Assembly (NCBI GenBank): GCA_020536535.1
Contig: JAHLWZ010000476.1
Span: 1-64,000 of the forward strand
DNA length: 64,000 nt
Source of the DNA: Pelomyxa schiedti
Lineage: Eukaryota; Protista; Evosea
Direction of reading: 5' to 3'
The notes beneath the pieces were generated by a model. That model searched no databases and was not told where the DNA came from. It saw only the letters and a program-made list of their open reading frames with translations. Of the stretch, positions 57,403 to 62,027 are shown one piece after another (position 1 is the first letter of the stretch; each line of letters begins with the position of its first letter). The translations under genes and the position numbers were made by a program.

Positions 57403-57670
57403 TTTGTTTTTCTAATAAACGGACATGCGTAGTGACCGATCGGCTTTTTTTGGATTGAGAAATTCCGACAGATCTGTAAATGGACTGTGTGCTGTCTGGT
57501 TTTTTTCCAGATCGTGGGTGTCTGTGATGAAGCACCCAGGAGGAGTTAGAGACGCAGGAACAAGATGACGAGGATGAGGAACTTCTTCTCTTTTTCCAAA
57601 CCAAATGTCCTAAGAATCAGCATGTAAAATAGCTTAAAAACGTGTGATAGTGGACCTAGTTTCAATTAAC

Positions 57671-59280
57671 TCAACAGTTACTCGTAGTCGCGGTGGAGTC
57701 CCTGTCACCACGTGAATTGGGTGTAGAGGATGCGGCAGCAGTGGCCATTATGGGATCGGTTGCATTGGGGGTTGGAGTATGTTGTGCTTCAGGGCTGTGT
57801 GTTTCAGTGGGAGAGGGGTATGTAAGAGGAGGTAGGGGATTCATAAACTGACTCCACATGACTTTTGGTTTGCCCGCGAGGCTCCGGCAGAGTTCTTGGA
57901 TAGCCGCATCGGTTTGACCTTGAATGATCTGTTGCACATTTCGTTTATCTTCTTCGGTTTGCACTCTTACGCGCTGGGTAATCATGTTCATCTGTGGTTA
58001 TTTTAGTTGTTGGTTAATGCAAACAAATCCGTATTGACGGAACACGTGCCTTTCCTATATAAATGTGGTCAGTAACAAATTGAGACAATAGGTCCACGAG
58101 GGCCGCGGCATTGTGTGTGTCAAGACACGGCTCCATATTGACACTTGTTCTGTATCCCTCAGAGAAGGCATACTACTTTAACATCACAAATTTCCTTAAT
58201 TAGATATTGTTGTAGACTTTAAGGGCCTCGAATCTCTCTTCAAAAGTGGGTGCATGAGGTTCCCAATAGCTTAGTAAAGAATTGTTCTGTGCCCCAATAG
58301 TGAATCGGAAAACAAGTAAATGCTTGTAGGGTTTAAATTCGCTGCACATTCGGGTTACGCAGGACATATGGGGTTTAGAAAAGATGTAGACAAAGTTCCC
58401 TGCCTGAAAAAGCTTTTTTAACACCTTCAAGATGTTATCCAAGTATAAAATGTTAGGTGGAGCCCACAGTTATGCATGCTTCAAGAACAGAGGGGAAAAT
58501 ATCGTGGGACGACGGAAACATTACCTAAAACTTTAGTGCACTTCTTCAATCCCTAATCCCACACCGCTCCATTTTTAAGCTTCCTCCTGGATTTGTTTAC
58601 TTCACTCCAGCGGATCGATGGATTCTGGTCCCATTCATCGGCACTTGTTTGATGGTATCTTGAAGTAGCATAGTGCCTAGCATAACAATATCTGCATTTG
58701 TGCAAGCAACCTGCACACGGTGAGAAGGGAAAAAAAAAGACTCAGTACACTCCCTAAACAAAACAAGTGGCATAATAATAACACAACAAGACCAAAACAG
58801 AAACACCCAAATATAACCAGCCGTAACAAGAGAAAACACGAAGCCCAAAAACTCACCCGTCACGCAGTTGACAGAGTGCCGCACGATCCTCTCAATGTCG
58901 TTGTCCCCCTCGCACCCCTCGTCCCCGCCCATAAGCCCCATCCTTCCCGCCTTGGTGGCGTTGTTGTTGGCACTAGCACCAGTCGCGCTCGTAGTAGTCG
59001 TAGTCGTAGTAGTCCTAGTCGTAGCCGTTGTTGTATCATCGCTGATCCCCACGGCGTTTCCATGGCCGCCCCCAAAATTCGCCTTGCTGGTTGTGGTCGC
59101 GTCCAACGCCGTGGTGGCTGCTCCCGGGCTCGCCCTCACAGTGGCCGTCGGCGCCGCGTGGCCTGGGTCCGCCACCGTCTTGGTGTCGGGCGAGGAAGCA
59201 CCCAGTGCCCGGCCAAAGACAACTTGGTCCAGGGTGGTTTGCACCAGGCGACGTCGCTTCGGTGTCGTCGCGTTGGCCAT
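57671..59280 (-). CDS. Radical SAM protein, spore-photoproduct-lyase-like (prokaryote/phage-type), with eukaryote-style N-terminal extension; multi-exon
   Basis: After removing intron 58856-58711: NCVTGCLHKCRYCYA (CxxxCxxC); then VMFPSSHD, FSKPH, FRFTIG, WEPHAPTFEERFEALK, TSVNMEP, IYIGKMN. Confidence 0.88.
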
Positions 59281-59476: not shown

Positions 59477-62027
59477 CTACAGCCGTATCTTGGAGTCCAA
59501 CTTGGACTCTAGCTTCTCCTTCAGTTTCGCAGGAAGCTCCTTTGGCTTGTACTTCACGTAGGAAGCACCCAGTGCGGCCTCCCTAGCTTCTTCACTGGAG
59601 CCAGACTTTGACTCCCCATCTGATGCAGGATCGAGTTCTAACATCTCGGGCTCTAATTCCGCCGGCTCCAGTTCTCCTTCTTCAGCTGGTTCTAGTTCGA
59701 GAATATCACTATTATGTGGGGAGAGACGGCCTTTGGGCGAAGGTGTTCCTCGACCTGTGAGTGGTCAGAAAAGCGAGTGCGCTGGGGTATTGTTTTTTTT
59801 TTACCTTTGAAGTCGGCTGATAGCTTCATAGAAGCATCTGTGACAGAAGGTAGTTTTCCAGATATTTCTCGCTTTGTCTCGGTTTGCTTTACCACCACCT
59901 TGGGGATGCTACTACTGGAAGACTTGCTTTTGCTGCTGCTCGACGAAGATGACTTACCTTTTTTACTTGAAGATTTGGCTGAAGGTTGGGTTGTTACGAG
60001 TACTGATTGCACAGGTTGGACCTTCTGAACAGTTAAACTGAGCGGCTTTTCAGTTCCCTTACTCGACTTTGAAGAAGACGAGCCAGAAGACTTACTCTTA
60101 GAGCCACTCTTGCTGCTTGAGCCACTCCCGCTCTTGCTCTTGGAGCCATTGTGGCTTTTTACACCACTTGAACTTAGTGAAGATTTTGCTGCTGTGGGTA
60201 CTGCAACGTCAGTCTTGGGACTTGTGAGGACAGTTTTGGGTGCGATTTTTGGTTTTGAGGAAGAGGAGGAGGCACTGTTAGATTTGCTTCCTTTTTTCTT
60301 TGGAACGGCTGATACTGCCGGTTGGGAGGGCTTTGTGTCCACTTTGGCTTGTTGTGCTGGCACCGCAACTACATTTGAGGACTGCCGAGCGGGAACTGCA
60401 GGTTTACTTTCTTCAGGTTTTACAACCACTTTAGGGGTTGGAGATTTGCCAGATTTTGAGTGTGACTTCGACTTTGAGTGCGACCGGGAAGATGACTTAG
60501 AGTGTGAACGGGAAGATGGCTTGGAGCCCGACACAGAACCAGACTTGGAACTTGAACCAGACTTAGATTTCTTCTTTGTGACAGTCAAGGAAGTATTTTT
60601 GACAGCAGCACCTGGTGCATTCTTTGTGGCGCCAGTGCTGGGTACAGAAATTTTGGCTGCTGTATTTTTTGTTGCATCCAAGGATGGGGCCGAAGGTTTG
60701 ATTGGTTCTTTTGACTGGGTCTTTGGGGTTTTTTGCTTGGAGTTGGAAGAACCGGAATTGGACTTTGACCCGGAATTAGACTTTGAACCGGAGCCGGACT
60801 TTGAACCGGAACCTGAATGTGATCCAGACCATTGTGCTTGTAGCGCCCGTGCCTTTTTGACCAAGGCTTTTGCTCGTTCAGCGGCATCTGAATGTGATTT
60901 TGATCCTGATGTTGACTTGGATGTTGAGCCGGAGTGTGAACCAGGTTTGGATCCAGCCTTAGTCTTCGGGTTGACTTGTGGTTTGGGTTTTCCTGTGGCT
61001 GGTCCTGATCCAGACTTCGATACTGAGCCAGAAGCTGATTTCGAAATAGAGCGAGATCTTGACTTTGACCCCGACCTTGAACGGGAGCCCGAGCCTGAGA
61101 CAGAACCTGATCCAGATTTGGAGCCGGATCCGGAACGAGATTTGGAACCGGATCCGGAGCGAGATTTGGAACCAGACCCGGAGTGAGATCGTGAGCCGGA
61201 ACCTGAGCGTGATCCTGACTTCGATTTAGTGCCAGAGCCAGACCGTGAGCCTGATTTTGATCTCGATCTTGATCCCGAGCCCGATACTGAGCCGGACCCA
61301 GACTTGGACCTGGACCTGGACCTGGACGCCGATCCTGATCCCGATTTTGATCTTGATCTAGAACCTGAGCCTGATCCTGATACAGACCTCGACCTTGACT
61401 TGGATCCAGAACGTGAGTCTGATCTAGATCTAGATCCCGATCCCGAGTGCGATCGTGAACGTGAAGCTGATGATGTAGACCGTGAACCAGAAGACTTTGA
61501 TCTGGATTTGGAGCGAGACCTCGATTTTGACCTGGACCGGGACCTGGAAGAAGACCTAGCGCCTAAATGCAGTATTAACTGAGTGTCGTTCATACTTTTA
61601 AGGGGTGTAGAATTTAAAGGAGATGTAGAAAAAGGGAGAAAGTAATGGGAGAAATGTACCTGCAGCAGGTTTTTTTCCTGCACCAGAAGGTGCTTGGGCT
61701 TTGACGTTTGTGGCTGGTTGTTGTGTCTTTGTTTTGGTGTCTTCTACTTTAGTGGTTGGTTTTTGTTGGGCAGAGGGTCCCGGGTGAGGTTGCTTTTGTT
61801 GTTGCTTGGCGTCGATGACAGGTTTTGCGGTGGCGGCACCAACTGGTGGATTGTGGGATTGGGACTTGCCTACCTTTTTTCCTTCTGGTTTCTTCAACTT
61901 AAAATATCGAGTTATAAACTTGACAAACAAGATGCACAAGGATGAAAGAAAAAAAAACCTGGGGCAAACGAGAAAGAACAAAAAGACCCTGTTGGGTCTT
62001 CTTCATTTTGTACACGTTGTTATACAT
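59477..62027 (-). CDS. Ser/Lys/Gly-rich low-complexity protein with long alternating S-X (RS/SG/KS) tract; multi-exon, start uncertain
   Basis: 663-aa open frame with SRSRSKSGSGS repeats, splice-compatible flanking exons, acidic C-terminal exon ending KIRL*. Confidence 0.75.

Follow-up and report, generated by a model that had tools for sequence, protein, structure and literature searches.

Does the anaerobic amoeba Pelomyxa schiedti carry, as a spliced gene of its own, a radical SAM enzyme of a kind otherwise met in bacteria and phages, and on what would such an enzyme act? The question is raised by a stretch of 64,000 nucleotides from this organism (contig JAHLWZ010000476.1 of assembly GCA_020536535.1, positions 1 to 64,000 of the forward strand), referred to below as the window. 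A first-pass annotation of its sequence had removed one intron from the minus strand to create a radical SAM cluster loop, and had proposed an SPL-like enzyme that was laterally acquired, gained introns and was retargeted to the nucleus, and possibly to PCNA, in an anaerobic eukaryote. The host fits this description, P. schiedti being an anaerobic free-living archamoeba. With a probability of roughly 0.8, we conclude that the locus is a transcribed six-exon gene of P. schiedti, which encodes a member of an uncharacterised SPL-related radical SAM family, was acquired laterally and has DNA as its probable substrate.

Structure, splicing and transcription of the gene

The gene occupies positions 59280-57671 of the minus strand and consists of six exons with a combined length of 1278 bases (425 codons and a stop). 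The sequence features of the first-pass annotation, and its intron at 58856-58711, all lie where it had placed them. Its spliced model was correct in that intron and incomplete beyond it, four further introns being required; these (introns 2-5) were located by local tblastn against paralogues and bacterial homologues. In the order of the coding strand, the parts are:

Exon 1, 58857-59280, minus strand: ATG at 59280; leader MANATTPKRRRLVQTTLDQVVF, linker (some 110-125 residues) and start of the domain (...RHSVNCVT plus the first base of a Gly codon).
Intron 1, 58711-58856, minus strand: 146 nt, phase 1, GTGAGT..GTGCAG; donor G/GTGAGT at 58856, acceptor TGCAG/ ending at 58711.
Exon 2, 58565-58710, minus strand: GCLHKCRYCYARHYATSRYHQTSADEWDQNPSIRWSEVNKSRRKLKNGA, with the cluster cysteines C143, C147 and C150.
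Intron 2, 58525-58564, minus strand: 40 nt, phase 0, GTGTGG..TTTTAG; homology-based, outside the RNA cover.
Exon 3, 58468-58524, minus strand: VMFPSSHDIFPSVLEACIT, with the invariant His197-Asp198-Ile199.
Intron 3, 58425-58467, minus strand: 43 nt, phase 0, GTGGGC..TTGAAG; homology-based, outside the RNA cover.
Exon 4, 58218-58424, minus strand: VLKKLFQAGNFVYIFSKPH...FRFTIG...WEPHAPTFEERFEALK; covered by an RNA contig over 58218-58391.
Intron 4, 58173-58217, minus strand: 45 nt, phase 0, GTCTAC..AAGTAG; RNA-confirmed (58218 joined to 58172).
Exon 5, 58050-58172, minus strand: YAFSEGYRTSVNMEPCLD...VTDHIYIGK.
Intron 5, 57992-58049, minus strand: 58 nt, phase 0, GC-AG (GCACGT..CCACAG); spliced out in RNA contigs from three runs.
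Exon 6, 57671-57991, minus strand: MNMITQRVRVQTEEDK...GQTD...KPKVMW and a Pro/Thr/Ser-rich tail; stop at 57673-57671.

Within exon 1, the leader MANATTPKRRRLVQTTLDQVVF is followed by about 110 residues of Thr/Ala/Gly-rich low complexity and then by ...IERIVRHSVNCVT; the end of the exon aligns with positions 15-22 of the family profile and with HSVNVILG of bacterial members. Removal of intron 1 joins ...SVNCVTG to CLHKCRYCYA, reading ...SVNCVTGCLHKCRYCYA, and it is through this splicing that the cluster loop C143-x3-C147-x2-C150 (CxxxCxxC) arises, with cysteines that are invariant across the family alignment. After the loop, the spliced product contains MFPSSHD, SKPH, FRFTIG, WEPHAPTFEERFEAL and TSVNMEP, and it ends in the Pro/Thr/Ser-rich tail in place of the family's usual C-terminus.

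The joined product was assembled from these coordinates and used for local profile alignment, tree building and motif scans, while database searches were made with single exons or with the deposited paralogues. Against a family profile built from 148 members of 255-280 residues each, the spliced 425-residue product aligned over positions 15-247 of 263 with a score of 318 bits (E 5e-97) and with zero gaps at any of the five exon junctions. All 19 residues found invariant when 44 family sequences were aligned are present in it, among them C143, C147, C150, H197-D198-I199, K226-P227, W263, A267-P268 and R273. Retention of every one of these residues is far beyond chance.

RNA supports the 3′ half of the model directly. 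Single-cell cDNA contigs from three runs of one study, with template-switch oligo sequence at their ends, cover 57648-58391 and join 58218 to 58172 and 58050 to 57991; these junctions confirm introns 4 and 5 and show that the gene is transcribed. No additional splice was seen in the contigs over the exon 6 region (57648-57991). Introns of the GC-AG type, to which intron 5 belongs, make up 1.59% of introns in the P. schiedti genome (PMC8887013). In one contig, from run X2, the junction lies between 58049 and 57990 and not between 58050 and 57991, which changes the first codon of exon 6 from ATG to GTG (Met to Val) and keeps the frame; this could be an allele, a reverse-transcription or assembly error, or a shifted alignment.

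Introns 1-3 lie outside the RNA contig cover. Intron 1 is predicted from its canonical GTGAGT..CAG ends, the gapless profile alignment and the homologues: the coding sequence of paralogue P0025 runs continuously across the intron 1 point (SCVTGCKHECRYCYA), as do those of bacterial homologues (HSVNVILGCPHRCRYCYA). At intron 2, KLKNGA/VMFPSSHD corresponds to RLENGSVMFPATHD of P0025, and at intron 3, ACIT/VLKKLF aligns to PCMIVLTKLL of the same paralogue.

Pfam and NCBIfam scans of single window exons gave sub-threshold matches only, exon 2 alone resembling Radical_SAM and Fer4_12 weakly. For Radical_SAM (PF04055), the window exons alone reached 16.9 bits against a gathering cut-off of 29.5 bits, whereas full-length homologues scored up to 46 bits, 33 of 59 long members matched at E<=1e-5, and many full-length family members pass the cut-off. 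The fold contains the partial TIM barrel of the Radical SAM superfamily. Taken together, the profile match, the invariant residues and the spliced cDNA bear out the proposal that a radical SAM enzyme is encoded here by a eukaryotic gene with introns.

A radical SAM family of phages and anaerobic bacteria

The domain belongs to an uncharacterised family of radical SAM proteins of about 265 residues (262-266 in typical members), a distinct branch that has SPL as its nearest characterised relative by sequence and is not itself an SPL. The catalytic domain spans approximately residues 134-369, and the family is a distant sister of SPL within the COG1533-type group. Its members carry the name 'DNA repair photolyase' in IMG (a COG1533 label) and 'radical SAM protein' at NCBI. 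The PHROGs entry for the family, matched by bacterial members and paralogue exons and not by the window exons, is phrog_13321, of unknown function. A search of 1.84 billion representatives with exon 4 alone (80 residues) returned 730 clusters at E<=1e-3 and 310 at E<=1e-10.

The kinship to SPL and COG1533 that the first-pass annotation had read from the motifs holds at this remove: the PDB profile search and Foldseek point to SPL, and the IMG name to COG1533. When the family profile was compared with all PDB sequences, only SPL was significant (E 9e-5 to 4e-4), over some 160 positions from the cluster loop through the [WF]EPG...RL motif; exon 4 alone found no match in a PDB sequence search. 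Foldseek with a model of pLDDT 96 likewise returned SPL as its top match (TM 0.57), although by VIA Z SPL is not nearer to the family than SuiB, RlmN or viperin. With SPL (SplB; PDB 4FHC; PF20903; TIGR04070), an enzyme that acts on DNA, the family shares the radical SAM core, a CxxxCxYCY loop and the series FRF[ST]I ... [WF]EPG.. ... RL.

The differences from SPL are considerable. Identity is only about 16%, the family domain is some 75 residues shorter, and its members score 15-25 bits against a cut-off of 400 for TIGR04070 and 13-22 bits against a cut-off of 27 for PF20903. The invariant motifs H-D-I, K-P and W-E-P-x-A-P are the family's own. Moreover, the hydrogen-donor cysteine of SPL (Cys140 in the Geobacillus enzyme, located by aligning the profile with the mutant chains 4FHG and 4FHE) aligns with Thr or Ser of the family motif MFP[TS][TS]HDI, and with Ser in the window copy; since Ser/Thr stands at this position, the family is not simply an SPL.

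Other named families are no closer a fit, all models of this kind (SPL, Rv2578c, PA0069, mobile pair protein B, DUF5131 and DUF1848) scoring 13-42 bits against cut-offs of 27-430. Of the hidden Markov models to which the first-pass annotation had pointed, Radical_SAM is thus recovered in full-length homologues, while SPL and DUF5131 stay below their cut-offs. Rv2578c (NF038135) and PA0069 (NF033668), both of the COG1533 type suggested by the IMG name, give weak collinear matches at the cluster loop and the EP..AP..ER..L region, but only 18-42 bits against cut-offs of 430 and 360; their proteins are longer, at about 320-350 residues, and likewise uncharacterised. Radical SAM mobile pair protein B (TIGR04470) gives weak near-full-length matches (profile positions 19-202 of 285, at most 38 bits), and DUF5131 and DUF1848 give sub-threshold matches at the cluster loop. 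These last three share with the family an association with mobile elements, although every score is far under its cut-off. Two metagenome proteins of the family, P0002 and P0042, carry LAGLIDADG inteins at or beside the cluster-binding loop, and in this they resemble the intein-containing Rv2578c family.

Outside the amoeba, the family is abundant in phages, including jumbo and tailed phages, and in anaerobic bacteria. A GTDB scan (one genome per species) gave 371 confirmed matches, mostly in Desulfobacterota (Desulfopila, Desulfocapsaceae, Desulfobulbaceae), Planctomycetota, Verrucomicrobiota, Bacteroidota and Cloacimonadota, with a few in DPANN archaea. At least 239 viral contigs were found in IMG/VR, some of them 230-340 kb long, and in the ESM Atlas the clusters closest to the family have a viral share of 60-92%; among the gene contexts that were read are one on a 363-kb phage-like contig and one on the Desulfosediminicola chromosome. 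Cultured-phage GenBank records contained no close member, the only match being one of 29.5% in Acidianus two-tailed virus. PADLOC made no defence-system assignment for the radical SAM domain, and a literature search (Pelomyxa radical SAM, SPL lateral transfer, DUF1848, radical SAM with ParB) found nothing on this family. The GTDB, IMG/VR and Atlas counts thus agree with the earlier description of the enzyme as prokaryotic and phage-borne. Among the best 120 matches in each of two lists, one of them limited to proteins of 285-906 residues, three Pelomyxa proteins were the only eukaryotic names, so that the closest homologues are not those of a widespread eukaryotic family.

Paralogues and history in the amoeba

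The window gene is not unique; it is one of four to five paralogues. In the P. schiedti assembly, published as 52.37 Mb in 5337 contigs (PMC8887013), we found four clear copies, on contigs C476 (the window), C676, C518 and C267, and a divergent fifth on C1005. Domain identity is 43-54% among the four and 47-58% to the best bacterial or phage members. Three paralogues are deposited in GenBank as P. schiedti proteins, namely P0025, KAH3761550.1 (P0093) and KAH3764692.1 (P0041). Like these, the window copy belongs to the family and has introns and a low-complexity N-terminal extension unrelated to theirs; unlike them, it has the longest C-terminal tail and no intron position in common. By profile column and phase, the introns of the four copies are:

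C476 (window): 22, phase 1; 68, phase 0; 87, phase 0; 156, phase 0; 197, phase 0.
C676: 93, phase 0; 139, phase 0.
C518: one before the domain (phase 2); 47, phase 2; 93, phase 0; 139, phase 0.
C267: 47, phase 2; 108, phase 0.

Two introns are thus common to C676 and C518 and one to C518 and C267, while all five of the window copy are private. The shared positions indicate that C676, C518 and C267 descend from an intron-bearing ancestor inside the eukaryote.

Trees are less decisive. FastTree and other quick trees placed the Pelomyxa copies inconsistently, the long branches of C267 and P0085 attracting each other, and for this reason the history was judged by intron positions and an approximately unbiased (AU) test. 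A site-heterogeneous maximum-likelihood tree of 46 rows put the four copies in a weakly supported, unresolved group of nine rows together with a few metagenomic sequences; in the same tree the window copy pairs with C267 (91/93), which also attracts a long prokaryotic branch. Monophyly of the four copies was not rejected by the AU test (p 0.255). The simplest history is a single transfer with later duplication, and a separate transfer for the window copy is possible.

Given the prokaryotic and phage kinship and the introns, lateral acquisition followed by intron gain, as the first-pass annotation had proposed, is the best reading. The gene line most likely came into the amoeba from such a bacterium or phage. 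There it would have acquired spliceosomal introns, as well as low-complexity extensions at both termini, and its number would have risen to four copies or more, with a divergent one in addition. This divergent copy, at about 16290-18207 of C1005, is a fifth SPL-like radical SAM gene, 27% identical to P0025. Its cluster loop is CKHVCTYCY; it also shows the motifs FFPSSCD and FEPRASSYAERL and one or more introns, and its N-terminal extension is very long, acidic/basic and of low complexity, and contains several clusters resembling a nuclear localisation signal (NLS).

The deposited protein set appears to lack the window copy. Its product would score 234.4 bits against the query of one of the best-120 lists, just over the listed P0041, and yet it is absent from that list, so a complete model of the window gene is probably missing from the deposited set and the copy is probably unannotated. 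P0041 itself, the product of the C267 gene, is named 'DUF1848 family protein' in GenBank. A Pfam scan of its two largest exons found no DUF1848 and only sub-threshold SPL and Radical_SAM matches, and this name therefore looks like a misannotation.

Past the radical SAM gene, and immediately upstream of the gene that follows, the minus strand of the window holds a 663-residue open reading frame (59692-61683) that consists almost entirely of Ser/Arg/Gly/Lys repeats (SRSRSKSGSGS...), an SR-like low-complexity protein.

Substrate and destination of the enzyme

Cys143, Cys147 and Cys150 would hold a [4Fe-4S] cluster that cleaves S-adenosylmethionine to a 5'-deoxyadenosyl radical, and this radical would abstract hydrogen from the substrate, most probably DNA, for repair or base modification. 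A DNA substrate is suggested because the relative SPL repairs DNA, because domain fusions in the family are DNA-related and because neighbours on mobile elements point the same way. Among 59 members of at least 400 residues, the extra domains are ParB_N in 5 (two with the ParB helix-turn-helix), clamp-loader-type AAA+ in 5, DUF1848 in 4, inteins/LAGLIDADG in 3-5, N6/N4 DNA methylase in 2, and a DnaG zinc ribbon and MgsA_C in 1 each; every one of these partners that can be recognised has a link to DNA. Where the gene sits on viral or integrative elements, its neighbours include Prim-Pol/D5 helicase, ParB, integrase and portal genes. In P0007, P0013 and P0297, a TubC_N docking domain stands N-terminal in methylase-radical SAM and clamp-loader-radical SAM fusions. 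This domain is otherwise known from nonribosomal peptide synthetase and polyketide synthase assembly lines. Remote homology and domain fusions would suggest a role in DNA repair or modification. The odds for the substrate are put at about 45% for DNA and about 15-20% for RNA, with something else for the rest.

One genomic context calls for caution. In Desulfobulbales chromosomes, the SPL-like radical SAM gene is the middle member of a conserved one-strand trio, after RNase PH and before a PNPOx-like flavin mononucleotide-binding protein (22-28 genomes); at 27 of 28 loci it comes immediately after RNase PH in the same orientation. Other members, by contrast, stand in phage or mobile-element surroundings. 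This synteny may hint at RNA, or it may be inherited. If the substrate were a tRNA or rRNA, the amoeba copies would be RNA-modifying enzymes; many radical SAM enzymes do modify RNA, and the structural score of RlmN is as high as that of SPL. We consider this unlikely, since the RNase PH arrangement is limited to one bacterial order and may simply have been inherited there, every recognisable fusion partner is DNA-related, and SPL, the sole significant sequence relative of known function, acts on DNA.

In the leader, the first-pass annotation had recognised an NLS (PKRRR) and a PCNA-interacting-protein (PIP) box (QTTLDQVVF), the latter noted as non-canonical. KRRR, at residues 8-11, fits the classical monopartite pattern K-[KR]-x-[KR]. 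About 5% of shuffled versions of the protein have such a motif among their first 125 residues, so that the pattern alone is weak evidence. The leaders of the paralogous copies are not alignable with each other; the C518 extension carries KKRKNKGKGKGK and that of C1005 several basic clusters, while C676 and C267 have none. Import into the nucleus is plausible as a prediction from the motif, and the basic N-terminal cluster may send the protein there. The PIP box does not survive. In QTTLDQVVF both aromatic positions of the motif are taken by Val, the Phe comes one place late, and no match to Q-x-x-[LIMV]-x-x-[FYW]-[FYW] was found in the window product or the paralogues, even with position 7 relaxed. 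The PCNA gene of P. schiedti, on contig C949, is split into several exons.

The complete scheme first put forward, in which PKRRR directs nuclear import and QTTLDQVVF tethers the enzyme to PCNA for replication-coupled radical repair or modification of DNA, is very improbable. A replication link is not absurd in itself, as some prokaryotic members are fused to clamp-loader-type AAA+ domains, and the NLS pattern and the basic clusters of the C518 and C1005 leaders would suit the nuclear half of the scheme; the tethering half founders on a sequence that fits no PIP pattern and recurs in none of the paralogues.

The extension might instead target the mitochondrion-related organelle, where the enzyme would act on a non-nuclear substrate. 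In anaerobic protists, several Fe-S enzymes of lateral origin are directed to organelles of this kind, and the first 30 residues of the leader are rich in Arg, Ala, Leu and Thr. The organelle of P. schiedti is treated in PMC8887013. We give this destination very little credence, as the leader contains Asp17, continues into about 100 residues of Thr/Ala low complexity and bears no relation to those of the paralogues.

Equally hard to credit is a reading of the window copy as a paralogue in decay or without function, or as bacterial contamination through mis-assembly. In favour of this, its branch is the second longest of the four, the GTxEW motif and the KESIKxVxGL that ends other family members are missing, and it is seemingly absent from the deposited proteins. 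Against a pseudogene stands a spliced frame open over 425 codons with all invariant residues in a transcribed and spliced gene, and bacterial contamination is excluded by the spliced cDNA, the spliceosomal introns and the eukaryotic flanks.

A bolder possibility is that the amoeba captured an SPL-like enzyme from a phage or bacterium and now keeps five nuclear genes with NLS-like leaders for oxygen-sensitive radical chemistry on its own nuclear DNA. We regard this as doubtful. If true, it could mean a new DNA base modification, or the repair of a lesion that photolyase-free anaerobes cannot otherwise remove; the enzyme would be the first eukaryotic nuclear one of its kind, and would give a handle on the function of a large phage and bacterial family.

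On the reading preferred here, that of a transcribed, laterally acquired member of the SPL-related family, the window copy is a new and apparently unannotated member of a gene family already in the databases. Lateral transfer into an anaerobic protist is an ordinary kind of event, and in such organisms Fe-S enzymes gained by transfer are met repeatedly. The presence of four or five expressed copies with introns in a eukaryote shows the activity to be of use beyond phage-host conflict, and the P. schiedti copies offer a second system in which to search for the substrate of the family.

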